A stretch of 63,973 nt of DNA, the filler included, from Lenisia limosa (lineage: Eukaryota; Protista; Breviatea): the NCBI GenBank assembly GCA_001655205.1. It is 12 parts of 12 records of this genome, joined end to end, with 100 filler letters (N's around TTAATTAATTAA, not from the genome) between each part and the next. Parts side by side here need not be neighbours in the genome. Positions count along the whole stretch, not along the records: positions 29,362 to 50,444 come from LPNZ01010942.1; 11 more parts are not named here. One strand, given 5' to 3'. Shown here one piece after another: positions 36,101 through 50,919 of this stretch (its first letter is position 1; the number at the start of each line of letters is the position of its first letter). Made by a program: the position numbers and the translations under genes. The notes beneath the pieces are model-generated. The model did not search any database. It saw only the letters and a program-made list of their open reading frames with translations, and was not told the DNA's origin.

Positions 36101-39100
36101 CTAATAACATGGTCCTTGACCCTTTTAGGTATCGTGGTTACCAAGCTGCTGACCCCTCAAAATCTATATCCGACCACTCTTCTGCTTTAACTGTGCCTTC
36201 CTTCAACTCAACCACACATCCCAACTTATTCGGTCTGAGGAGTCTTGGCTGAGGGTATTCATTGATACTACAATTCAAATAAATAAAAACATATATATAT
36301 GTACATAACAAAAAAACATACGTCTGATGATTGGTTGTGTTTCTGATTCAAAACTATAGAACACCTGGGGGTATCAACGGCCAAATTCAATCGTCAAGCT
36401 GGGGAGTTCCTGGAATCGAACATTCTTGAAGCAACATTGGTAGGCGTGATTGATATTGAACAATAGATGATGGAGAAGACTGGTTACAAAATGATACATA
36501 TGAGATCATTTTTTTGCAGTTCCTCAAATCGTTCATACATTTCCATTTACAATCGGAATGAACTTACCCTGTAGTTATCAGCAGGCATCAAGAGGTTTTT
36601 GGTGGAAGTGCCACTGGAAAGAGGGGCGATCAAGGTTGTTCCTGGACAGCATTTCCTGATACGGTAAATGGGCTTGCTTCTGCGTCTCAATGAATTAATC
36701 GCTCTTAATGCTCTTACGGGTTGTCTCAGAGTGGGAGAAGAAGGCAAAATGGCTGTAAGACCGTACTCAGTGCGGAGTATCGATGCCGGCACCAAGCTTG
36801 AGTTCTTCATCAAGGTTGGTTTGAGAAATGTTTTGCAAGTGCTTCCGAACCAGATCGGCCTGATTCAGAAAGATGTACTGATAAACAGTCTGAGTGCTAG
36901 TATATCATATGTAAAGCTATAACCACAGCATAATAATATTGCATTATCTTTGCCTTATTTCCCCTAATACCTGAACTCAACAAATAGAATGTACCTGGTG
37001 GAGAAGTCTCACCCCAAATCTTTAATAAAGAGCCCAGTGACACCATTCAAATTGCAGGTGGGTGGGTGCAATAGTATCCTTTGTTCGACTTTGAAGAGCA
37101 TTTGCTCTTAATATTTCTTGCTGGTTCCTATTCCGTCCTTTAACGAAAGCAATGACACTATTTAGGTCCGCATGGACTTCCACCTTTCATTGATATCACA
37201 ACCAGCAAGTCATTCTGTGAGTCGAGACATTTCATACTAAAAGACTTATACAAAGGATGGGTGCAGCTATCATACGATCAATCTGATATCCTCAATAAGC
37301 TATGTATTTGGGCAAATACAACTTGAATCCATTTCAATAAAAGCTATCAACCACAATCAGAATGGATGTTTTTGACAGTCATAGGCTTCATAGGTGGCGG
37401 TACAGGCATGGTACCCCTGATATATTTGATTGAAACCTTGGTGAAAATGATGAAGAACGAAGGGTACTCGCAGAATGAGGGTGTTACACTCTCTGCCGCG
37501 GACTTTGACTTCACCTCCAGTTCGGGTGTTCTGCTACCTGCTTCGGTTACTACTCCAAGAATGTAGGCATATCTTACTTGAGATGTGGAGTAAGACTTGA
37601 AAACTATCGATAATTATTAAGAATTTATCAAAAGTTTTTCACTCTTTATGGCAACGCGTAACAGCCCCTTCAGAATTCAGATCAGAAGAGTACCCAAAAG
37701 GACAAAATTTCTCTTTACATTCTTTTTAGAATCGATATTTGCTCTTTTTTCTGGAGTAAAGCCTGATTTATTGATTAGATCGCCAGACCTCACACCATCC
37801 GCAGTCCCTCTCCTCAATGGACAAGTAGGTGACTTTCTTCTTTTAAAATAGAACCATTCACAGTCTTGTTTTTAAGATGATACTTCTTCTTATTAATGTT
37901 TTTAGCGCGCTGAACCTTTGTATTTAGACAGTGAAAAAAGTTTGAAGGATATTGGTGTTTCAATTATCCTTTACCTTTAGCTTTTTTATTTACTTCTTTT
38001 GGGCTACTATTAGCCTTTCACTCCCTAGAAGCGGAGTTTGAGATAACTATTAACTACATTTGTCGGACCCGTGCAGATATGGTTATGCTCCCCATGCTAT
38101 ATGAGGTTGTTAAGACTGCGGGTCCTAAAATCAACATACACCTCCATCAGATCATCTCACAGGTATGTGGGTTGTTTTCCATTCGTCTTTGATCTTCAGC
38201 AAGCAATATGACATTCACTTGACAGGTTCCACGCTTCTCTTCCGCTCGTCCTTCTGTCCACACACTCATTTCCAATGTGGGGGGGGGNNNNNNNNNNNNN
38301 NNNNNNNNNNNNNNNNNNNNNNNNNNNNNNNNNNNNNNNNNNNNNNNNNNNNNNNNNNNNNTAGGTGAAAATTATTACACTATATTAATGATCAATGTTT
38401 GTTCTCTTGATATTGGTGATGATTACGTTGTTATGATCAAAGGTTCGTTCTATTGATATTGGTGATGATTACATTGTTATGATCAACGTTTGTTCTATTG
38501 ATATTGGTGATGATTACGTTGTTATGATCAATGTTTGTTCTATTGATATTGGTGATGATTACGTTGTTATTCGATATTATGTAAGATTTACAGTGACCGG
38601 GATAAGTCTTGACCGATTTTCATTGGGAAATTACATTGCAAATCGGCCAAGACTTATCCTGTTCACTGTACAAAAAAATAGAGAAGCAGCCCTTGAGATA
38701 GTTCATATCCTTTAATAGCGCAGATCGACTCCCTCCCGTCGTCTACGTACTTCCTGGTGGGAGGGCTTGGCTGAAGTGCAATGGATACTTCGAACTCATA
38801 CAAGTAGAGAATAGGGAATAATGATACACGTAAAAGGACAGTATGGAGGACTTACATGGTGAAGGCCTATTTACCGTCCAGATCTGTGGCCCACCTGCAA
38901 TGGAACTCGGACTCATGGCTGAACTTGCTTTATTAGGGTTTGTTTTTCTTTTTAAATTGTTTTTGAAGAAGCATTTGCCACTATTTAGATGACGTTTTGT
39001 GCACGGAATGTAATTAATTATGATTCCACACTCTGATTGCTTAGTTTTAACGTCCATCTTCTTGACGAGTCCACTTTGCCAACAAAAAGCCCAGTAGGGA

Positions 39101-39924
39101 GTTTCACTAGTGAATCTGCACTTACTTTAATATTAGGAGGCCCAAGAAAAACCTTGCTCCATTACGACGCCCGCCTCCATGGATAAGTCAAAAAGTCGCC
39201 CAGGCTACTCCATGGAGCAAATTCGAGATTCAGTGAGTGGGGGTTGCGTTGTTTTGTTGATTAATTCAATGTCTCACATTTATATAATGAAAGCCTTTTC
39301 ATGCATTTTTACCGGTTTAGAAGGGGCTACTAATTGCGATCAACGGTCTTGTCTACGACCTTCAGTCATTTTCAGCCACCCATCCAGGCGGGGAAGGTGG
39401 GAAGTCACTTCAGCGAGGGCGTTAACTTCTCACCTGTTAGATATTCTTGAGGCCTACAAAGGACAGGATGCAACCGCTGCGTTTGCATCTGTTGGTCACT
39501 CTCAGGTTTGTGGATTTTGGGTTTTTTTCCTTACTTTGATTGTGTAGCACGCTATAATGCTAATGGAGCGCTATTGTGTCGGTATCCTAATGTAGTCTTT
39601 TATCCGATAAGGCGATGTTTTTTTCCAATGTGATATGATGTTTTGATACGAATTGGGCTGACTTAGTACTGTATGTTAGACCTGTGGGTTGGTGCACCTT
39701 GTAATTCCTTCATTTTGTCAGTCTTGCACAATCCAGAGTCGATCAGTGAGATCAATTGGTCACGGTGCTGAATTTTTTCAAAAGTAAGTAATTAGAATAG
39801 AATTGATTACTCTGATAGTTTGGATGGTCGACCCCAGGTGGCGGCTCAATCAGTCATCCACCCAGAAACCCAAAGAGATAAACCCAAATCATCAAATCAT
39901 TGCTTGGAGGCACATGGGCATTGA
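33160..39924 (+). CDS. Signal peptide-DOMON-cytochrome b561-FAD/NAD(P)H reductase (b5 reductase type)-cytochrome b5 fusion protein
   Basis: DOMON: YTLSWALDEEWLMIEVIAEAEGYIGFGIG, CSFRRPIEAFDKYD, VSYAIGGFGEQHGCFDRG. b561: THAIFGYTTL, MFHRYGGASVMILAFVTIYFGI. FAD: VPGQHFLIR, RPYSVRS. NAD: GGGTGMVP, CGPPAM. b5: INGLVYDLQSFSATHPGG, GQDATAAFASVGHSQHAIMLMERYCVGIL. Confidence 0.8.
38388..38569 (+). repeat. 45-bp intronic minisatellite x4
   Basis: Unit atgatcaatgtttgttctattgatattggtgatgattacgttgtt, head-to-tail with no spacers. Confidence 0.95.
38591..38668. mobile_element. ~78-bp Tc1/mariner-type MITE family C (TA-CAGTGACCGGGATAAGTCTTGACC…CACTG-TA)
   Basis: Inverted-repeat hairpin with CAGTG ends and TA flanks. 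Other copies at 5368-5440, 52031-52111 and 61419-61478. Confidence 0.85.
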
Positions 39925-40153: not shown

Positions 40154-41560
40154 CTAAAAAGTGAACGAGTAAGAGCGTGGCATGGTAATTGTATCATATT
40201 TTGTCACCCCAGGACCCTCCAACTGCGGGTCATTTGTGCCCGTAGACTCGCCAAGGCCGACCCTGATCCCGTGACTGTCAGTCACCCTGTAGACTGCCAA
40301 AGAATACCCCGATGTTGCGCAGTCGGAAACTGTTCCAAAGTCCAAACCTGGGGAGGGTGGAGTAAAAATGGAAAATTTATGAAACAAAAACCCAAAATCA
40401 ATTCTGTTTTATGAGGGTTGAAAGAAACAAAACAGACAAAGACCAGGCCAGTTGCATCTGCAGCACCGCATCGAACCCACGGAGGTTAAACACATCCATC
40501 ACTCCAACGAACCCGCGGAGGTTAAACAAATTTTATTTGGACACAATAACAAAAATTCAACTAATCACCGTTTTGTATCCCAAAGTAGACCTGAGGGGGG
40601 AGGGGGTGCGTGGGAAGGAATGAGAATAAGACCAACGGAATTGCACATTAATTCAACTCCAACCTCCGTACTGGCCATCCCGTCTGTTAGAAACCAGGGT
40701 GCCGGCCTTGATACATCTTTGCGTCAGTGTCAGCCTGGGGTATGACCAAGAATAATCTGTACAGTTTGGGAAATAATCGCTTGGATAGCAAAAAATGCAA
40801 GGGAGGGATTGTTTTAGATTCTTAAAGTCCCACATCTGGGGAGTAAAACGCCTGTATTTTGGTGCATGCACCGTCATAAGTGTTTTCAGGAGCGAAGGCA
40901 TGTGTCTGGATGAACATTTCTGGGACCTGAGGGGTCAGGGTCAGTTTAAAACAAGCATTTGGTGAAAAAGACCATTTTGACTTCGGTCCCACCTGGTATC
41001 CATAGATGTAGTTTGTTTCGTTGGCTATTCCACCGATGACAACACTGGGTCGGAAGGGCAGGTGCCGGACTGGGACACTGAACGTGCTCGTGGCGTAGAG
41101 ACCCTCGCCAGATACAACCTGCATGAATTATCGGAGCTTCGCTGAGTATAATAACAATAATATTTTGACAATCCAGCTGCTAACCTCATTGCTTGGGTCA
41201 TACAACCAGTTGCTTGGTGGGAAGGTGTCGACAGCCTTGCCCACAACCATGTAGTTGCCATCAAGGAGCCCAACAAGGCAGAACACCTCCAATATCTGCG
41301 GTCTGTTAATGCGGCCCAAAAGCCCGATATAATGTCAAAATTAAAACATCCGATTGCTTTTTTGGATCCAATTTAAGCTCCCTTCTATCTACCATCATCT
41401 TCTTCTACCATCATCTTCTATCTGTCATATGTACATCATCTGGCAGTCAAAACCACTTACCACGCCTGTCTTGAGCTGCACTCTATACTGCCCGGATGTG
41501 GGGGCGTTATCACAGTGCCTGATTAAGGGTATCTCCTCAAGGCTTGTCACCTGAAACTAT
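40154..41560 (-). CDS. Multi-exon hypothetical protein (beta-rich, possibly extracellular), 3' part
   Basis: Minus-strand exons with ccccag acceptors: LDFGTVSDCATSGYSLAVYRVTDSHG...YSFTF*; STFSVPVRHLPFRPSVVIGGIANETNYIYGYQVGP; ILEVFCLVGLLDGNYMVVGKAVDTFPP. The 5' extent is unresolved. Confidence 0.55.
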
Positions 41561-42752
41561 TAAGTCTTACATTGTATTATATTTGGCTTTCGTAGACAAC
41601 CCTTTATGTACATAATCTTATCTGATTTATACCCACTCGTCGATAATTGAACAACGAGTAGTTCTGACCCCCCCACTCTTGAAGCCAGTGTGGTGATGTT
41701 AGTTTCTAGGTTGATACCTACAGAGTTAAGTGATTACCAAGAGGTCTGGTCCTTGATAATTGATAGCAGTGAGTTTTACCGGCAGAGAAGAAAAGAATTG
41801 CTAAAAAAACGCTATAATCTCAAAGTGGAAAAACTATTTGACTCCACAGTAAGCAGTCCCACCGTTAACAAAAACTTCAGTGGCAACGAGCTTCTCAACA
41901 ACTGTTCCACCTTGCTTTCTAAAATCCATAGTCAGATTTATTCAATTGTTCAAATCGTTTTTCAGTGCACGAAAACATCAGACCCTCCCTCCCTTACTGG
42001 ATAAAGAAAGCAGCGCTAAAGGGCACCAGGCAGAGGCCTACGAACAAAAATAGTTTCACCAGCTTCATTGTGTGTGAGTTTTTTTCGAGTGGAGCTGGAG
42101 TAGGGGTGGAAGAGGAGGCTTGGGGGACTTCGGATTATACTTCAATTATCACTGTAAAAGTTTAAATAGCATTAGTACGGTGATTATACGGGTTAAACTA
42201 ACACCATTAATAGTGCTTGCTTTGAAACTAACGGAACATAAGGTAAGAGATATATACACCCCATGCTTTGGAATATTGCGGGAGCCGTGTCTTGTGGCTT
42301 CTGAAACTCTTTTGCTTTTTTGCGCTGTCTTCTCTCTCGATCAAACTCACAGCCACCGCTTCTTCCCTCCTCAACTTGGCAATTATCACTGCGCAACATA
42401 ACTGCAATCAGTCGCAATACCAGCTTCCTACCTATAGAATATTCTTATATAACATTGTTAATATGTTAATATAATCTCAACCAAAAGCCAATCCAAGTTT
42501 TCCTTCAGTGACAACAGGTAGGCAGTCACTGCAGTGCGTTTATTCCAGCTGAAATCACATTTGGATGAGATATTGTGCGGTCGTATGTCTGATTCATGCT
42601 CTACACTCTTGCCATTACGATGAGCTTTAAGGAATATATATTGGGTGAATAATGAATTGATTACTTTTTCTTTCGCCAGTTACAACCTTTACTTTTGCTT
42701 TCGTCAGTTACAACCTTTGCTTTTCTTCTTATGTTCATAGAGCGCCAGCCGA

Positions 42753-45700
42753 ATGCTTTGGGTGACTGTTCTGTGCATTGCGTTCAGGTGATATGAATGG
42801 AGTATTTGCATCATATATGGGGGCACTCCATCACTATTCATACTTTCTTGGGGGGGGGGGGGNNNNNNNNNNNNNNNNNNNNNNNNNNNNNNNNNNNNNN
42901 NNNNNNNNNNNNNNNNNNNNNNNNNNNNNNCTTTCAAAACCAGTAAAAGTGGAAAGTCCTCGATATACTCCCAACTCCTCGTGGAATGTGAGGTATGTAA
43001 CACCAACCAGATAGCAACGTATCAGAAAAATCCCTTCAAGCACCCATTACATGGCGCTCTAATTTATTAGGCCGAGGCTGAAGCGCAGTGTCAAGGCAGT
43101 CTTGAAGTTTGAGAGTTGTCGCAATTGTTGCGTTTTTTTGAATAGTTTTCTCTTTGCATCAGATTGCTCTTTATTTTTTTCATTCCATAGGATCTTCAGA
43201 GTCAATTTGCAAAAGAACTCAGTGTGAGATTGGTAAACTTGTTGTTTTTGCTCCAAAGTATTTGAGCTTAGAGAAATAAAGAGGAATAATGATTCAGCTT
43301 TATTCCATCGCTTCGTAGAAATTGTCGTACTATGATACGATTTTTGTATCATCACCCTACACTGTAGCGAAATTTTATCAAATAATAGCACACCTTTCAT
43401 AACGTTGGTTTAGTGGGCCAATGAAGACAATCAACGTTCAGTTGAGGTATGTTTAATCCTCTTCAATCACTATATGTTCAGAATTTCGCATTCATACTTC
43501 TTTTAATATCTTGGTTTTATTTATTTTTCGGGTTGAAAACACAATGCCAAAAAGAATTTTTAAAAAACCCAATGCAATTATCAGTGTTGTTCAGTCTATT
43601 GTCTACTCTCATGATACTGTAGACGATCAAGAATGATCTGATGCACGATCTTCATGTGAGTTCTGGAATATTATATTTTTACTGTCATATGTTGGTACCT
43701 GAGATTACTAAAATCTATCATGTTTATATAACTTTTGATTGGTCGCCTCTACTATATCATATGATATTGGTTAGTCTCCTTCATGTCCTATCCACACTTT
43801 ATTTGAATACTGCTGCTGATATAATACCTTTCCAGCGATTGAAGCAAGAGTGCAACCAAGACCTAAAAGTGGGTGGCTGGGGGGGGGGGGGGNNNNNNNN
43901 NNNNNNNNNNNNNNNNNNNNNNNNNNNNNNNNNNNNNNNNNNNNNNNNNNNNNNNNNNNNNNNNNNNTCATTTTTCAGCGTCAAGGGCTGGAGTTTCGCC
44001 AAGATATTAAGGTAAAAATCTCTAATGCATGAGATAGCAATGCAATATTTGGTGCAAATAACCAATTCCGTTTTGTCACAAATATTCGCCTTACTGCCAT
44101 TTAGAGAATTCAAGAAGACCATAACCGTGAACTTAATGTAGGCTATTGAGACTGATAATTGTTAGTGTTTCTTGAGGTGTTATGTCCTCGCTTTACCATT
44201 CATATCTTTGGAATAACCATTCAGCGGCTTCAAATCAGTCATCAGAATCATGTAGAAGTTGGTGGTGATTTTCTACATGCATTAATTGTCTCACTGGGGC
44301 GGTATGGCTTATATCTCATGAACAGTGTCAAATTTGTTTGATTAATTACTATAAATAGTATATCATATCTTTCGCTTTTCTATTTTCCTTCTTCATTGTT
44401 TAGTCATTGAAAGCAAAGCACCAACAGGAAATCGAAAAGGTCTGGAGGTTGATATGAGCTGAAAACGGGAGGAATGGTATATTCTCTCTTTCTTTCCAGA
44501 CTAATTTTTGTAGGTTACAGTACATGGAGAATCTTACGAGGTTGGTCGGGTTGAACTTCATTGTTTTTCAAACTATAAGACATTAATTTGTCATTTTCGC
44601 AACATTTTACTGTTGCAGGACTTGGATCGGCACTACCGCCAAGAAGTGGAGGTTATTGGGCCTCCAGTTCACCTTGGGAGTAATACATAAAAAAATCTTC
44701 TCGGGGGTTTATTTGTTTTTTTGGAATAAAATGAGGCTCTTGCTATAAAACTTGTAATTTTGGTGGCAAATAGTGAGTCTAAACTGAACCCTTAATTATG
44801 CCAGTCTTTGTATGAGTAGCCTTGATATTGCCCACAGACATTGGCAGCGTTTGCGAACACCAATGCCCGATTTGTGCATAGAGAGCTGTTCACTCGCGAC
44901 CTTTCAATAGGGCCCCTCGTTATCTATGTCCACAATCGTCCACACTATTTGAGGGTAGGCTTCTCACAAAATATTCTTCAAAACGGAGTTCTACACTTTT
45001 TATCTGTATTGGCTTCTTTTTCATATAGTATGCATATATTAATATCTCATATGATATACTATGTGTATGTTCTGCCATATCCAGGAGTGGATATGGCGGA
45101 GTGAATTTTTTTGATTGATTATTTAAGGATGTTCAGAGGGACGAACGAGTAAAAAATGACGTTCCAAAAATTCCCATGTGTATATCATATGATATACATA
45201 TATTACACCATTTACCGTTCCCCAGCAAGTCCTTAGTAGCCTTAAGGATGTTGTGAATATCAATAAAACCGAACTGATTATATCCCATGACGGGCTTTCG
45301 GATCAGATGAACGCCCTGGTACAAACCATTGATTTTATGCCTGTTGGAGGGGAAGGGGGTACGAACTTGATTTCAGTTTAATAAACCATTGAAGATTTGG
45401 ATAATGTATCATGTTACATCTAATTGCCTACAGTACATGCAATTAGTACATCCGAGCCGTCTACACAGAGGCAAGGGACTCAAATCTCATTGGTGGTATG
45501 TGGGCTATTATCCTGTGGCTGAATTGAGAGAGGTGGTTGAAGTACATATTATCATATAGCAATATAGTATGTATTGTGATATATAATACATAATATAGTA
45601 TATCGTATAATATGATATATACAGTTATGTACATACATATACTATGTGTTCAAACAATCAAGAAAGGGTGCCCTATCTGCTATTCAGATCGGGGAACCAT

Positions 45701-47309
45701 TGTGTATAATATTCCGCTGTTTACGCCGAAAAGCTGGGATGTAAACCAATCCACTGACTATTTTCAGCACAAGTGTGATTTCAGCAAATATAGTTGGTTT
45801 CTTCGTTTATTTGCTTCGTAAATGGTCATTAACACTTCTTCAAGGTGGCTGATGTCCAAAGTGTACAATGAATTCTATGAGAGCTATGACGGCTTTATAA
45901 CGTTCATAGAGGAGGACCATGTGTTGTCTCCTGACTTCTTACTCGTTAGGGGGTGAATCAGACACTACCTCATCTTCACTCTTTTTTTATTAACCCTAAC
46001 TAATGATTTGATTGGTAGCCTGAACTCATTTTTTATTCAGGTTCAATCTGCTCTGCAAGACACCCTTCGCATGTTACCCCTCGAGAAGCGAAAGGAGTTC
46101 TGGGGTGGTGCCCTCTGGTCTTTCGAACTGTTTGGGGGGAAGAGGGTGTCATTTTCCTCGACATATTTTGTGCCTCATTGAGGGGCGTATCATGCTTTTG
46201 GTATGTCGTCAGCTCAATGATGCAATGCTTCGATCTTGTCTTTTTTTAATATCAACGATATATCTCATCATTTTATTATTTATGAAATATTGACACATTC
46301 AGTGAAGCACAGCCCGAAATTATGGAAGCGCAATGGGGATTATTCAACACTGGGTTCTTCTACAGCAAGTTGGCGCTGATCTATCCTGACATCAATTTCT
46401 AAGATAAGTTAACTCATAAATGTCATGACTTGACCAATATTATATCACTCATCCATAGGGTCTATGTCTGACTTAAGTCATGTGAATGGAGAGGGGGGGG
46501 GNNNNNNNNNNNNNNNNNNNNNNNNNNNNNNNNNNNNNNNNNNNNNNNNNNNNNNNNNNNNNNNNNNNNNNNNNNNNNNNNNNNNNNNNAGAAGTACATT
46601 CGGCTCTTCTTCGAATGTGATGATGGTGAGGGGCAATAGCATATTATTCTAAGGGTAATATGTTGAGATTGTTTTGAATTATCAAATAGTATTTGCGCTG
46701 AGATGATATCATAATTATTATGATCTGTCGTTCATACTTTGTGTTTAACAGCCTTAAACACTCACATCCTCAGGGTGGGACGTATGTGTACACTGGATGA
46801 TCCGCTGGGAACTACTACCTGGACGTTNNNNNNNNNNGACTGAACAAATCGTGGGTCTGGTTCAGTTCAGTTCATAAAATCTCGTCATAAATTTGCCACT
46901 GTTTGTTGACCCTATCTTCCTTCTACTTTCAAATGTTTGTATCATTACTCCTTTTTCACTTAACTTTAGTTTGACGAGCTACAATTCGACCAAATGGTGA
47001 GCATAAATCTCTTATGTTTCAGTCGTAGAGTACTAGCAGCATACACCATATTACGATGCGGTGCTGCAAAAGCGACTGGCCGGGGCTTTNNNNNNNNNNN
47101 NNNNNNNNNNNNNNNNNNNNNNNNNNNNNNNNNNNNNNNNNNNNNNNNNNNNNNNNNNNNNNNNNNNNNNNNNNNNNNNNNNNNNNNNNNNNNNNNNAAC
47201 CTTTGAACCGCTTTCGTTGGTAGTTGAATGGCCAAACATGGCGCTTCCTCGTGAAGAGTGCTTGACTCTTACGCCTCCACAGTTCAGCGGTGTGGGTGTG
47301 GGGCTGTAG
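42753..47309 (+). CDS. GT16/MGAT2-like Golgi GlcNAc-transferase, copy 1, with micro-exon-encoded stem
   Basis: Anchor-like MLWVTVLCIAF, then micro-exons, then VIYVHNRPHYLR, ELIISHDGLSDQMNALVQTIDFMP, KSHWW, FIEEDHVLSPDFLL and GWDVCVHW, ending LTPPQFSGVGVGL*. These match MGAT2 VHNRPEYL, SHD, HHWWW and LEEDHYLAPDF. The true start may be upstream. Confidence 0.8.
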
Positions 47310-47579
47310 CAGCGTTATTTTTTGATTTAAGGATAAATATGGTATTGTTTGTATTCTGTTCTAAATGTATTTTAGAATGATAAGGGAACAGGTATTAACT
47401 TTGGTTTTGATTCTTTGGGAAGGGGATAAAAAAAAAAAAGAAAACCTATTGACTTCTCAATAGCTAATCAAAAAACGTTTCCACGGAAAGAAAGTTATAA
47501 TGTAATAGTATGTCAAACTGTGCACCTGGCATCATTGTGGAGAAAGATGTGAAACTAGCATAATAAAATGAGGACAAGA

Positions 47580-50400
47580 TTAGTGGTGTCGGCCGTGGTG
47601 GTCGTTGACCATTTTCGGCGGTGTCAGGGTCTTGCAGTCCTCACGGGGGTGCAGTGGCTCCTCCGGCCACTGCAATACCATAGTTGACTCGTCAAATGTT
47701 CGTGAAGTGGAAATCGTCTGGAGCATGAGAGGTTCTTGTTAAAGTGAAATGTAGATGTTACCACGGGTGTATCAGAACTTTATTGAAATGAGAAATCAAT
47801 ATTATAGTTCAACGAAGTTTCGCCCCTTACCATGTTTGCGAACTTGAGATCGTCATACTAAATCGTTACGAAATACACAGAACACAAAAAGGGAACTGGA
47901 TGAAACAACAAACTGAACTGAACCAGACCCACGATTTGTTCAGTTACGTGCAGGCCAGTGCGGCCGACATTTCGCACTCTTGACAGACGAGGGTGCAGGA
48001 AACGTCCAGGTAGTAGTTCCCAGCGGATCATCCAGTGTACACATACGTCCCACCCTGAGGGTGTGAGTTCATTTTCAGCCTTCTTAGTTGTTGAATATGC
48101 TTACCATCATCACATTCGAAGAAGAGCTGAATGTTTCGTTTGATACTCTCGTACATTTCTCTGAAGAGGGGTAAAGGCAGGTTGTCATTTTTATTAAAAT
48201 GCTAAAGAGTTTAGACTACCACTGTAATACACCATCAGTAACTATGCCTTTCACAGAAAATTGAGGAAAGTGCGTACCGTCGGTAGAAAAACCCGGTGTT
48301 GTATAGGCCCCACCGCGCCTCCATAATATGCGGCTTCTGGTTCCTGCTTGGTGAGTGCCAAGTAACAAGGTTGAACAAGGACATCGACCATGGGGTAACA
48401 CCCCCACTGACAGTTCGAATGACCACAGGCAGCCCCCCCAGAAGTCCTTTTTTGTTTCAGCCGGAAACTCGTCAATTGTTTTCTCCAGCGCGGATCGGAC
48501 CTATCGCGTTAACCATATGGCGGCTGTTTGGAGGGGGTTTGATTGATTGTAAAAAGACAACCCTTTTAGAAGTACCCATATAGCATTGAAGGGACCCACG
48601 AGTAGGAAGTCAGGAGCCAACAAATGGTCCTCTTCTATGAACGTGATGTACCCGTCATAGTTCGGGTAGATTACTTCATACACCTCGCTCAGAAGCCACC
48701 TGGGGAATGAGGGAAAGTAATTAACACCCAGGAGCCCGTAATATTTCAGCACTTAGTACAAAATGAGCTAAATACAGCTAAGTGCTGAAATGTTACGGGC
48801 TCCAGAGGAAGTTGCAACCCAACACCTCACTTACCACCAGTGTTCCTTCAGTCCAAGGCCACGATAGAATCGGCTCGGATGAATGAGTTGACGATACTGT
48901 CAGGGTAAAACAAACGCCTACGATACAGACAAAAACCGATGTCAAGTCACCCACTTCTACGTCTTGTATGATTGATGTCTTTTTTGAAAAACTCAAAAGA
49001 GTCTTCCACAACCCTCTTCTTGTTTTGCTATGTCTGATTTTTAATTCTGTCACCAAATATTACAATTATGCATGTATACAATGGAATTATATGATATGTA
49101 CATACAGAGTATGATACTCTCCCTCCAACAGGCATAAAATCAATGGTTTGGGCCACATCATCCATTTCTGGAGACAAGCCGTCATGGGATATGATTAGTT
49201 CCGTTTTGTTGATACCGACGACATTGCGTAAACCGTTGAGTACACTCTAGAGGGTATAAAACAAGATTGATTGTATTGGCTGAACTATGAAAAAACAAAA
49301 CAAAGACCGTCAGTTCAAGAAAGATGAAACATGAGCAGAAAACTGTCTTACTTTGAAGTAAAGCGGACGATTGTAGACGTACAAGACAATTGGGCCTATT
49401 GATGGGTCTCTGACAAACTTCTCGCTGTTGATGAAGTGGGCTCTTCGGTTTGCGAATCTTGACAGCCCCTTAATAATAAATCAATGCTGCTCATTTGGCT
49501 GATTTTTTAAATCAAAGGATGGGCGGAGGGAATACTGAAGAAAAAGGCCGCGATGCTGAGGCACTGGAAGCTGTATCAAAAGGCTGGAGTTTCGCCAAAT
49601 ACAACAGCCTCCTCCCTACCTCAACTTCTAATAAATACAATGGCCTCCTCCCTACCGCAACTTCTAATAAATACAATGGCCTCCTCCCTACCTCAACTTC
49701 TAATAAATACTGGCTGTCAATTGTCTAGATGATCAGAACAGCATACTCAGGAGGAGACTTACCTTCGTGAGCCCTTCACACTGCTTCTCCAAATTCAACT
49801 CCACCTGTACAGTCAGGGAATTGGAAAAGGACCGTTTTTGTTCAGTAATCTAGTCAGTTTTTGTGTCTGACATTGCCTTCATCTGTACACAGCTTTCTTT
49901 GCACCTTCCTCATATGATACACTCTAACTTGAAAACCCTCCCCAACCGTTTTTGAGGAACTCTCAGATTTTTGTGATGTTTCGTGAATCTAAAGTGATAC
50001 ATTGGTAACAAGCAAAATGTCAAAAAAAAAAAAAAAAAAANNNNNNNNNNNNNNNNNNNNNNNNNNNNNNNNNNNNNNNNNNNNNNNNNNNNNNNNNNNN
50101 NNNNNNCAGCTAACATCAATAAGATTTCATTCCCACCTCCTTCACTTGCGACAGCTGATTGATGATAATGGGGATGACAACCACATTGAAGCAGAGGAGA
50201 ATGATGAAGGCATACCTACGGAATAAACAGCAAACTCAAAGAAGCGCTTAGAAGATAATAATCATTATTTCGACAATATTACCAAGCATACTGCAAGAGA
50301 CTCATAGTAAGAACTTGTCAGTTAATGGGGCTCTTAGGAACCCTGCTGTGTAAGCAGCTACACGCACTTCTTCGCTAAGGCCCACCGCGCTACCGTTGCT
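47580..50400 (-). CDS. GT16/MGAT2-like glycosyltransferase, copy 2, 5' truncated by scaffold end
   Basis: Minus-strand exons: FVRDPSIGPIVLYVYNRPLYFK; YRQLIHPSRFYRGLGLKEHWW; YDGYITFIEEDHLLAPDFLL; GWDVCVHWMIRWELLPGRFLHPRLSRVRNVGRTGLHV; ending PREDCKTLTPPKMVNDHHGRHH*. Each pairs with a copy-1 exon. Confidence 0.82.
48731..48803. mobile_element. 73-bp hairpin (ggagcccgtaatatttcagcactta…taagtgctgaaatgttacgggctcc) in an intron of GT16 copy 2
   Basis: Near-perfect 25-bp inverted repeat; only one copy in the window. Confidence 0.6.
49597..49709 (+). repeat. 36-bp tandem repeat x3
   Basis: Unit aaatacaatggcctcctccctacctcaacttctaat. Confidence 0.92.
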
Positions 50401-50919
50401 CTATTATTGTCTTCAATGTTGCAGTGAAGGGGGGGGGGGGTAAGNNNNNNNNNNNNNNNNNNNNNNNNNNNNNNNNNNNNNNNNNNNNTTAATTAATTAA
50501 NNNNNNNNNNNNNNNNNNNNNNNNNNNNNNNNNNNNNNNNNNNNAAAATGGAGTTATGAAGTAAGCAAAATCCTGAATCAACTCTGTTATTGGAGGTGGG
50601 GGACTCCATAATATGGGTGAAAACGGAAATTAGGGGTGTGAATGAGTGTAAGTGTATGAGTGTGTATTGAATGAGTGAGTATATTCATTGCCCAAGGACT
50701 TCACTCGGTTCGAAAAAGACTGGTAAAATATCGATAGTTCTCGAGGATTTATCGAGAAATTCAGTCTTTTTTCGAACCGAAGTGAAGCTCTTTACAACCT
50801 GTCCTTATTTTGCAGGTTTTGCAAACTAAAATTTTCTTGGCCCATACACACTAAATAAACCACCATAGAGAATGATTATGTGTGGAGGTATGTCTAAGTG
50901 TGAATAAGTGTGTATTGAA

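Follow-up and report, generated by a model that had tools for sequence, protein, structure and literature searches.

The window, i.e., the whole stretch of DNA that was analysed (63,973 nucleotides, filler included), derives from the genome of the breviate Lenisia limosa (GCA_001655205.1), and the locus described here lies on its 21-kb piece from record LPNZ01010942.1 (positions 29,362 to 50,444). Two genes of glycosyltransferase family GT16 are arranged tail to tail on this piece. In the plus-strand gene, a frame that is open from the ATG at 42753 runs from a hydrophobic N-terminus through eleven phase-0 micro-exons (m1–m11) into the catalytic domain (exons c1–c8); the minus-strand gene is its paralog. 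The features and the evidence behind them are:

42382–42515, plus strand: untranslated exon at the 5′ end of the GT16 mRNA (RNA contig record 1, first piece)
42753–42787, plus strand: start codon and first 35 nt of the coding sequence (MLWVTVLCIAF and 2 nt; RNA piece 42739–42787)
42931–42992, plus strand: remainder of the hydrophobic N-terminus and linker (RNA contig, translation)
43071–43106, plus strand: m1, 36 nt, AEAEAQCQGSLE (AG/GT sites, translation, tail of RNA record 1)
43191–43223, plus strand: m2, 33 nt, DLQSQFAKELS (last 15 nt are a loose RNA end before 43414)
43414–43446, plus strand: m3, 33 nt, WANEDNQRSVE (RNA contig start after the m2 end; exon-only depth)
43623–43655, plus strand: m4, 33 nt, TIKNDLMHDLH (exon-only RNA depth of ~5; AG/GT sites)
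43836–43868, plus strand: m5, 33 nt, RLKQECNQDLK (exon-only RNA depth of ~5; AG/GT sites)
43979–44011, plus strand: m6, 33 nt, RQGLEFRQDIK (exon-only RNA depth of ~5; AG/GT sites)
44105–44137, plus strand: m7, 33 nt, RIQEDHNRELN (last 11 nt are a loose RNA end before 44225)
44225–44257, plus strand: m8, 33 nt, RLQISHQNHVE (RNA joint 44257>44404, GT..AG)
44404–44439, plus strand: m9, 36 nt, SLKAKHQQEIEK (RNA joints 44257>44404 and 44439>44514)
44514–44540, plus strand: m10, 27 nt, VTVHGESYE (RNA joints 44439>44514 and 44540>44619)
44619–44651, plus strand: m11, 33 nt, DLDRHYRQEVE (RNA joints 44540>44619 and 44651>44838)
44838–46827, plus strand: GT16 (MGAT2-family) catalytic exons c1–c8 (RNA joints, contig pieces, open frame, Pfam PF05060, 5VCM)
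44838–44954, 45226–45342, 45434–45495 and 45845–45944, plus strand: c1, c2, c3 and c4
46041–46129 and 46303–46368, plus strand: c5 and c6
46590–46625, plus strand: c7, preceded by 20 nt of the same exon in a gap
46774–46827, plus strand: c8, continuing across a gap
47850–50310, minus strand: tail-to-tail GT16 paralog (sequence comparison)
about 50214–50138, minus strand: predicted anchor exon of the paralog
49804–49763, minus strand: m1-like exon of the paralog, counterpart of m1, with a conserved QC.G motif
49724–49692, minus strand: candidate 33-nt exon of the paralog, TIDSQYLLEVE, best matching m11
49468–49352 and 49246–49130, minus strand: c1 and c2 of the paralog

The intron that follows the untranslated exon (42516–42738) reads, as aligned, GT..AT at its ends. 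According to RNA contig record 1, the next exon begins near 42739, and the ATG at 42753 is the first one after an in-frame stop codon that lies shortly 5′ of it within the same exon. The exon at 42931–42992 has its first 11 nt inside the assembly gap at 42863–42930, with 11 letters standing between 42787 and 42931 in the RNA contig, and its 3′ end is in phase 0. The first-pass annotation had placed the micro-exons between a membrane-anchor-like exon and the GT16 catalytic exons; that order stands, but the anchor-like part is really split over 42753–42787 and the gap-spanning exon.

In order, the micro-exons measure 36, 33 (seven times), 36, 27 and 33 nt. All eleven are symmetric (phase 0-0), and each regular exon encodes one 11-residue repeat, just as had been read from the sequence at first pass. 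Together they specify 121 residues (11 × 11); with 363 nt, they represent about a third of the coding sequence (at least 1131 nt) of an enzyme of more than 377 residues. Introns within the array are 74–190 nt long; being short, and with splice sites presumably paired across them, they would make special recognition machinery unnecessary for such small exons. The assembly gap at 43893–43967, between m5 and m6, is wholly intronic (donor at 43869, acceptor AG at 43977–43978) and is left unbridged by the DNA contigs of run X2, which end at 43892 and resume at 43968. Since the known exons alone carry the frame of ATG 42753 to the catalytic exons, no hidden exon is needed there; an additional exon of a multiple of 3 nt inside the gap is possible. 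At the DNA level, the array went undetected by Tandem Repeats Finder and a repeat search, and an Rfam search of the piece gave no match.

On the plus strand of the 21-kb piece, 54 open frames of 33 nt are preceded by AG and followed by GT, and 12 of these fall within 43000–44700 as compared to ~3.7 expected. When scored mutually in register (BLOSUM62, leave-one-out), the eight 33-nt members reach +2.6 to +13.0; under the same scoring, 87 background candidates have a mean of −11.0 (sd 5.7) and a maximum of 7.5. The ten segments reported at first pass were recovered in full, with their positions, the AG before, the GT after and their translations, and one exon had been missed, namely the 27-nt exon m10 (44514–44540).

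Expression was followed in polyA RNA contigs of run X1, a single small run with short contigs from the same study. These contigs splice the micro-exons to each other and to the GT16 exons, and the joint 44651>44838 both bears out the earlier claim that the segments are exons of the GT16 mRNA and rules out an array from a different gene; inclusion in transcripts, on which that claim had been made to depend, is hence found. Among the 15 of 27 joints listed are 44257>44404, 44439>44514, 44540>44619 and 44651>44838, all of GT..AG type. Loose contig ends support 43223>43414 and 44137>44225, and one RNA contig extends 33 letters past 42931–42990, which, together with depth arithmetic, fits 43069–43101 and hence the joint 42992>43071. 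The basis for the joints 43106>43191, 43446>43623, 43655>43836, 43868>43979 and 44011>44105, as well as for the gap stretch, is depth arithmetic. RNA depth multiplied by bin length yields 33-nt blocks at a depth of ~5 for the exons at 43414, 43623, 43836 and 43979, which means that the exons are covered and the introns are not; this exon-only depth also rules out DNA contamination of the RNA run. The arrangement as such is real and unusual, with the micro-exons joined to one another in their genomic order in polyA RNA.

Regarding the catalytic part, exon c2 alone matches Pfam PF05060 with 29.6 bits (cutoff 27, E 5e-7) and exon c4 with 21.9 bits, and a profile of c2 exons matches the human MGAT2 structure 5VCM (E 1.2e-9). 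The spliced protein aligns to the MGAT2 domain of protein P0001 (residues 184–371) and contains an E-E-D motif (FIEEDH, within FIEEDHVLSPDF) that is aligned to VEEDHLLFPN of P0001; this EED motif we take to be the counterpart of the one with which human MGAT2 binds metal. The protein also has HWWW and DD..WD blocks. Between the FMP and HWWW blocks, there is a gap of ~40 residues in comparison to P0001 and human MGAT2, and the C-terminus enters an assembly gap. Because of the missing ~40 residues, catalytic activity is only putative. In this family, it comprises the β-1,2-transfer of GlcNAc to the α-1,6 mannose arm of N-glycans. Judged by its sequence, the gene product is an MGAT2-type (GT16) Golgi glycosyltransferase with a predicted activity.

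The neighbouring paralog follows the same exon plan, but possesses at most one 33-nt stem exon and no array. A protein search with exon c2 retrieved three distant MGAT2-family proteins only, none with an 11-mer stem, and a homologue search with the 92-aa stop-free frame surrounding c1 found nothing. In a metagenome scan, a single locus (L001) was obtained, which codes for an MGAT2 of the ordinary, animal-like type that lacks a repeat stem and in which c1 and c2 are fused; an ortholog of the array was not among the results. Literature searches on 33-nt exon arrays, on hendecads combined with exons, and on consecutive or tandem microexons did not find the arrangement described.

The 121 residues of the array carry a clear signature of an 11-residue repeat. 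BLOSUM autocorrelation gives z values of 6.3, 5.6, 3.2 and 3.4 at lags 11, 22, 33 and 44, respectively, and hydrophobicity power peaks at 3.65 residues (~11/3), a value reached by 0 of 1000 shuffles; the hendecad-like periodicity suspected at first pass is, thus, borne out. Power at 3.5 is below the shuffle mean, by which a heptad coiled coil is ruled out. Hydrophobic residues occupy position 10 in 9/9 and position 2 in 8/9 repeats, in agreement with the initial reading of these two positions, and position 6 in 5/9; where the latter is not hydrophobic, it is mostly His. Positions 10, 2 and 6 correspond to the a-d-h spacing (3-4-4) of hendecads, and the seam is continuous. The direction of the stripe stays within 150–210 degrees from m1 to m9 (~100 residues) and jumps to ~50–60 degrees at m10/m11; m10 (44514–44540) probably interrupts the helix register or forms a hinge in it. 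Within the array, there are 3 Gly and no Pro.

Lipid-binding helices of the apolipoprotein, perilipin, synuclein and LEA kind have as their hallmark a repeat of 11 residues with a period of 11/3. The period measured in the array would, hence, also suit an amphipathic helix lying flat on the luminal leaflet. However, 2–3 of the 11 positions are hydrophobic, the others being mostly Glu, Gln, Asp and Arg with a negative net charge, and such a face lacks the width for binding lipids and is too acidic, which renders a membrane-lying helix extremely improbable.

Concerning its origin, the eight same-length phase-0 exons of 33 nt are homologous to each other, as judged from nucleotide identity and from their peptide scores relative to background. 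Exon nucleotide identity in register is 0.39 versus 0.31 (sd 0.014) for a codon-shuffled null, and intron–intron comparison within the array revealed no similarity; the weak likeness of the exons together with the unlike introns indicates that the duplications are old. The array may have arisen long ago from a 33-nt exon that, together with its intron, was duplicated serially in tandem. As one exon equals one phase-0 hendecad, each duplication would have added three helical turns, leaving both the frame and the coiled-coil register intact. Such a history could also have left behind a largely unstructured by-product of runaway exon duplication, loosely constrained in sequence and with no function beyond linking, considering that glycosyltransferase stems are often poorly conserved and that the paralog apparently works without an array. 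Yet 11 of 11 exons have kept open frames and splice sites, and the stripe of ~100 residues and the lack of Pro have persisted despite the lost similarity of the introns. Retention of these features while the introns diverged points to selection on helical structure and makes a merely neutral spacer very unlikely.

How the stalk is held depends on the N-terminus, in which Met1 is directly followed by a 16-residue hydrophobic run, i.e., no basic residues precede it; the run is followed by S-L-A (a possible cleavage motif), F-P-F and three Lys. The charge arrangement of type II anchors is governed by the positive-inside rule. By this measure, a hydrophobic run preceded by Met only and followed by small residues and a Lys-rich stretch is unusual for a type II anchor and would suit a signal peptide, after cleavage of which the protein would be soluble in the lumen or secreted, with the hendecads forming an N-terminal oligomerisation rod. 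Against this speaks that type II membrane topology is shared by GT16 enzymes and almost every Golgi glycosyltransferase, that the predicted N-terminus of the paralog has a longer hydrophobic run (~21 residues), and that Golgi anchors are short and their tails can be very short, e.g., 4 residues in MGAT4A (table in PMC13752275). The N-terminus is compatible both with a type II anchor and with a signal peptide; cleavage is regarded as rather improbable, albeit worth keeping in mind.

The reading we favour, with a probability of roughly 0.6, is that this expressed GT16 gene encodes a rigid hendecad helical stalk and oligomerisation module of ~15–18 nm that was made by serial exon duplication. Exons m1–m9 would form one unbroken α-helix of ~100 residues (~15 nm at 0.15 nm per residue), several of which might associate into a hendecad coiled coil that is almost straight, and the three cysteines in the stem would be available for interchain disulfides. 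Given that His, Asn or Cys frequently stands at position 6 and that the seam is narrow, the oligomer may be weak or pH-dependent. Exon m10, with its Gly and a one-residue register skip, could act as a hinge ahead of m11 and the catalytic domain. As a whole, the stem would serve both as a rigid spacer that keeps the catalytic domain off the Golgi membrane and as an oligomerisation module. Helical or coiled-coil oligomerisation modules are described for the stems of Golgi enzymes, namely for FUT8 (PMC9709245) and in a table of PMC13752275.

The first-pass annotation had further proposed that stalk length is tuned by exon skipping. Skipping of single 33-nt exons would generate isoforms with stalk lengths differing in units of one hendecad (1.65 nm), with altered reach or cisternal place. 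In favour of this, all 11 exons are symmetric multiples of 3, so that any 33-nt exon could be removed with the frame and the 11-residue register kept; micro-exon arrays are variably spliced in schistosome MEGs and SmVAL6 (PMC4015677); whether a type II Golgi protein localises to the rim or to the interior is set by the length of its luminal coiled coil (PMC13752275); and the estimated 15–18 nm come near the cisternal interior width of 14–18 nm given in the same source. However, the RNA gave no backing to this part: the joints listed (15 of 27, from the short contigs of one small run) all connect neighbouring exons, the two contig breaks are found within exons, 11 and 15 nt from the exon ends, and not at the borders, where a skipping branch would place them, and exon-only depth is even (~5) over m3–m6. 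RNA contigs drop rare variants, so this negative is absence of evidence and not disproof; skipping is, nevertheless, considered unlikely. Equally hard to credit, and if anything a little harder, is the broader idea that stalk length is set in 1.65-nm steps, as a genetically encoded glycosylation ruler, either by regulated skipping or by exons being gained and lost among paralogs or species; if it held, stalk length would move the enzyme from the narrow interior of cisternae to their wide rim or back, or change the glycoprotein substrates reached.

Returning to the proposed rigid stalk, the length of its ~100–121 helical-repeat residues is near the cisternal interior width, and the neighbouring paralog has almost no such residues; the GT16 pair, thus, constitutes a natural experiment on stem length versus enzyme placement or substrate reach. 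The gene is also a very clean illustration of how a coiled coil can grow through exon duplication, as gain or loss of an exon keeps both the frame and the helical register. For genome annotation, it is a warning that eleven consecutive exons of 27–36 nt are easily overlooked by gene finders.

With MGAT2 (CAZy GT16, GlcNAc-transferase II), the protein shares the PF05060 and 5VCM matches, the EED, HWWW and DD..WD blocks, and the succession of hydrophobic N-terminal segment, stem and catalytic domain. It differs from the family in its 121-residue hendecad stem, with the N-termini of P0002, P0003 and locus L001 lacking such a repeat, in the absence of ~40 loop residues, and in the presence of two tail-to-tail paralogs. 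Among Golgi proteins, the proposed stalk resembles the stems of FUT8, MGAT4A/B, GPP130 and GOLM1/2, all of which have a luminal juxtamembrane helical rod for oligomerisation (PMC13752275; for FUT8, PMC9709245), and rod length matters for the placement of type II Golgi proteins within the cisterna (PMC13752275). In contrast to the human Golgi proteins listed in PMC13752275, where the coiled coils of enzymes span at most 61 residues and only non-enzymes exceed 100, an enzyme here carries ~100–121 residues, with a hendecad period and one exon per repeat.

At the level of gene structure, schistosome MEGs have tandem symmetric micro-exons of ≤36 nt, similar to the 11 consecutive ones of 27–36 nt found here, and in SmVAL6, too, a conserved domain is encoded by large exons that stand alongside many micro-exons (PMC4015677). 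In MEGs, however, most coding nucleotides reside in the micro-exons, whose splicing is variable and whose products are small, secreted, variable proteins, whereas the micro-exons described here contribute about a third of the coding nucleotides, specify a regular structural repeat and show only adjacent-exon joints among the 15 of 27 listed.

The 54-bp exons of collagen are a further array with one repeat per exon. In the LRR and TPR genes of Ectocarpus, successive phase-0 exons of the same length each encode one structural repeat, as is the case here, and are expandable by exon duplication or shuffling without frameshift (PMC3341825). Unlike the Ectocarpus and collagen arrays, the one at this locus is built from an 11-residue helical unit in a 33-nt exon, is hosted by a Golgi enzyme, and is old and diverged instead of being dynamically shuffled.

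The plus-strand GT16 gene of the window is an MGAT2-family gene with an array of micro-exons (m1 to m11) between its N-terminus and its catalytic part:

from 42753, plus strand: N-terminus, with Met, a run of 16 hydrophobic residues and a Lys/Ser-rich linker of 19 residues
43071-44651, plus strand: 11 micro-exons (36, seven of 33, 36, 27 and 33 nt) encoding 121 residues, i.e., 11 x 11
44838-46827, plus strand: at least eight catalytic exons of 54-117 nt each

The catalytic part is recognised by Pfam PF05060 and is similar to human MGAT2 (5VCM, E 1.2e-9); alignment to the MGAT2 domain of the comparison protein P0001 spans residues 184-371, with the EED block intact and about 40 loop residues absent.

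All ten segments named in the first-pass annotation are in place, each with AG before, GT after, an open frame and the peptide assigned to it, but the list was incomplete, as RNA shows an additional 27-nt exon at 44514-44540. On the plus strand of the 21-kb piece, 54 segments consist of a 33-nt open frame between AG and GT, and 12 of these lie inside the 1.7 kb of the array, where about 3.7 are expected. More telling than these counts is the mutual likeness of the peptides: compared in register (BLOSUM62, leave-one-out), the eight 33-nt array exons reach scores of +2.6 to +13.0 among themselves, the mean for 87 other candidate segments from both strands being -11.0 (sd 5.7, maximum 7.5) under the same scoring. 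The array pattern exceeds chance.

Splicing was followed with contigs of the polyA RNA run X1, which stems from the same study as the DNA, aligned to 41500-47400; 15 of 27 RNA joints were listed. Among those listed are the GT..AG joints 44257>44404, 44439>44514, 44540>44619 and 44651>44838 as well as 45342>45434, 45495>45845 and 46625>46774 in the catalytic part. In one RNA contig, exon 43191-43223 contributes its final 15 nt directly ahead of 43414, and in another exon 44105-44137 contributes its final 11 nt directly ahead of 44225. A third comprises 42382-42515, 42739-42787, 11 letters placed in the gap 42863-42930, and 42931-42990, followed by 33 letters that fit 43069-43101, corresponding to joint 42992>43071 by the aligner's "cut +2" convention and the depth table. 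The joints m1>m2, m3>m4, m4>m5, m5>m6 and m6>m7 lie outside the 15 of 27 listed and rest on depth arithmetic; in the bins holding the exons that start at 43414, 43623, 43836 and 43979, the product of RNA depth and bin length is that of 33-nt blocks covered about 5 times. Since such exon-sized blocks imply that RNA covers exons only, DNA contamination and unspliced RNA are ruled out as its source. The further possibility, raised in the first-pass annotation, that the array is part of a different gene and the start of the GT16 mRNA lies near 44838, is rejected, because the RNA places the array within the GT16 mRNA. All joints among the 15 of 27 listed connect neighbouring exons, and RNA contig breaks fall within exons.

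An in-frame stop lies just upstream of ATG 42753, and the frame set there reaches the catalytic exons with the known exons alone; hence, both sides of the unbridged gap 43893-43967 are in frame as they stand. At this gap, contigs of the DNA run X2 break off at 43892 and resume at 43968; the gap is intronic (donor 43869 before it, acceptor AG 43977-78 after it), and the table of between-joint letters holds no unplaced letters for a joint here. Conceivably, it hides an exon whose length in nt is divisible by 3. Runs of about 13 G (or C) adjoin gaps or the piece end at 42850-42862, 43880-43892, 46490-46501, 50430-50444 and further gap edges; such runs probably arose as sequencing artefacts at contig ends and are not genomic, and the G runs at gap edges lie outside exons. 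At the 10-N gap 46828-46837, the RNA contig continues for 255 letters without a place on the window, the first of which encode a peptide that matches the C-terminal block of a GT16 paralog (..LHPRLSRVR..); more sequence is missing here than the 10 N would imply.

Several other elements occur nearby. The 5'-UTR intron 42516-42738 reads GT..AT, not GT..AG, as the RNA contig aligns, and contains a 28-nt tandem repeat (2.3 copies, 42661-42724). Upstream of the 5' exon, RNA contigs cover 41500-41893 at depth 2-4, possibly from another transcript, overlapping a 104-residue open frame (41690-42004) without family match. Farther upstream, plus-strand open frames at 37327-37563 and 39137-39544 show a weak, below-cutoff cytochrome b5-like match (PF00173, E 0.017) and a GGTG..P motif that recalls flavin reductases, and could be part of a redox-enzyme gene next to this one. 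The palindromic motif TATCATATGATATAC occurs nine times within two mismatches (0.03 expected), including 43752-43769, 45042-45059, 45180-45197, 45598-45620 and 36900-36914, with 8/8 matches inside the GT16 gene being intronic. DNA contig depth reaches 258 at 45046-45242 and 3770 at 47016-47212, compared with about 32 elsewhere, which, together with the recurrence of the motif, suggests small high-copy (MITE-like) elements.

The 121 stem residues include no Pro and three Gly, whereas Glu, Gln, Leu, Asp, Arg, Lys and His are abundant. The sequence is most similar to itself at lags of 11, 22, 33 and 44 residues (z 6.3, 5.6, 3.2 and 3.4), and its hydrophobicity power is highest at a period of 3.65 residues and shows no peak at 3.5. 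Hydrophobic residues occupy repeat position 10 in 9/9, position 2 in 8/9 and position 6 in 5/9 cases, the remainder at position 6 being mostly His; a, d and h of a hendecad have this same 3-4-4 spacing. Plotted in an 11/3 frame, the hydrophobic stripe points in a constant direction (150-210 degrees) through m1-m9, a length of about 101 residues. At m10/m11 it turns by about 110 degrees, since their neighbourhood of 12 + 9 residues lacks one residue of two full hendecads; a Gly is present in m10 as well. From this pattern, we infer that the stem would form one continuous helix of about 15 nm (at 0.15 nm per residue; PMC13752275) in a nearly straight coiled coil, with a putative hinge preceding the catalytic domain.

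Alternatively, the rod could be the oligomerisation domain of a soluble protein, with the N-terminal hydrophobic stretch as a cleaved signal peptide, in line with the S-L-A motif at the N-terminus, the Lys residues after the hydrophobic run and the absence of a basic residue ahead of it. As for a stalk, a helical Golgi enzyme stem that oligomerises is described for FUT8 (PMC9709245), and in plant GNTI a stem motif drives homomeric complexes (PMC10715278). According to a 2026 study, type II proteins reach the cisternal rim by the length, not the sequence, of their luminal juxtamembrane coiled coil, interior widths of medial and trans cisternae are 14-18 nm and, in the human list, enzyme coiled coils have at most 61 residues, only non-enzymes exceeding 100 (PMC13752275). 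Measured against these values, the predicted stalk of 15-18 nm would be unusually long for an enzyme and near the rim-sorting threshold. Tuning of its length by micro-exon skipping is conceivable but speculative.

The array exons are weakly alike in register (0.39 nucleotide identity versus a null of 0.31, sd 0.014), their introns show no similarity, and neither TRF nor a second repeat search detected a DNA-level repeat over the array; thus, the duplications are old, and open frames, splice sites and helical pattern have persisted through the time since then. The paralog bears on their origin:

47850-50310, minus strand: second GT16 (MGAT2-family) gene, tail to tail with the first
49724-49692, minus strand: candidate 33-nt exon of the paralog, TIDSQYLLEVE

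Its first two catalytic exons have the same 117-nt lengths as those of the plus-strand copy (54-69% identity), and a predicted anchor exon and an m1-like exon sharing a Q-C-x-G motif are present. The micro-exon array is absent from it, the single candidate 33-nt exon being the top-scoring background segment and closest to m11 (5/11 residues). An m1-like exon together with one m11-like candidate suggests that the ancestor had m1 and m11, while m2-m10 would have arisen in, or persisted only in, the plus-strand copy. In the paralog's stem intron, a 36-nt tandem repeat (49597-49710; 3.2 copies, 94% alike) starts within the candidate exon's 3' end and donor site; it resembles a duplication that arose locally and recently at the edge of a micro-exon.

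A literature search found no paper on 33-nt exon arrays, one-hendecad-per-exon coding or such a glycosyltransferase stem. Among the closest known arrangements are the 54-bp exons of collagen. Others are the schistosome micro-exon genes and SmVAL6 (PMC4015677) and the one-repeat-per-exon arrays of Ectocarpus LRR/TPR exons (PMC3341825). The array is a genuine and tidy piece of gene architecture, moderately surprising, and a variant on known arrangements.
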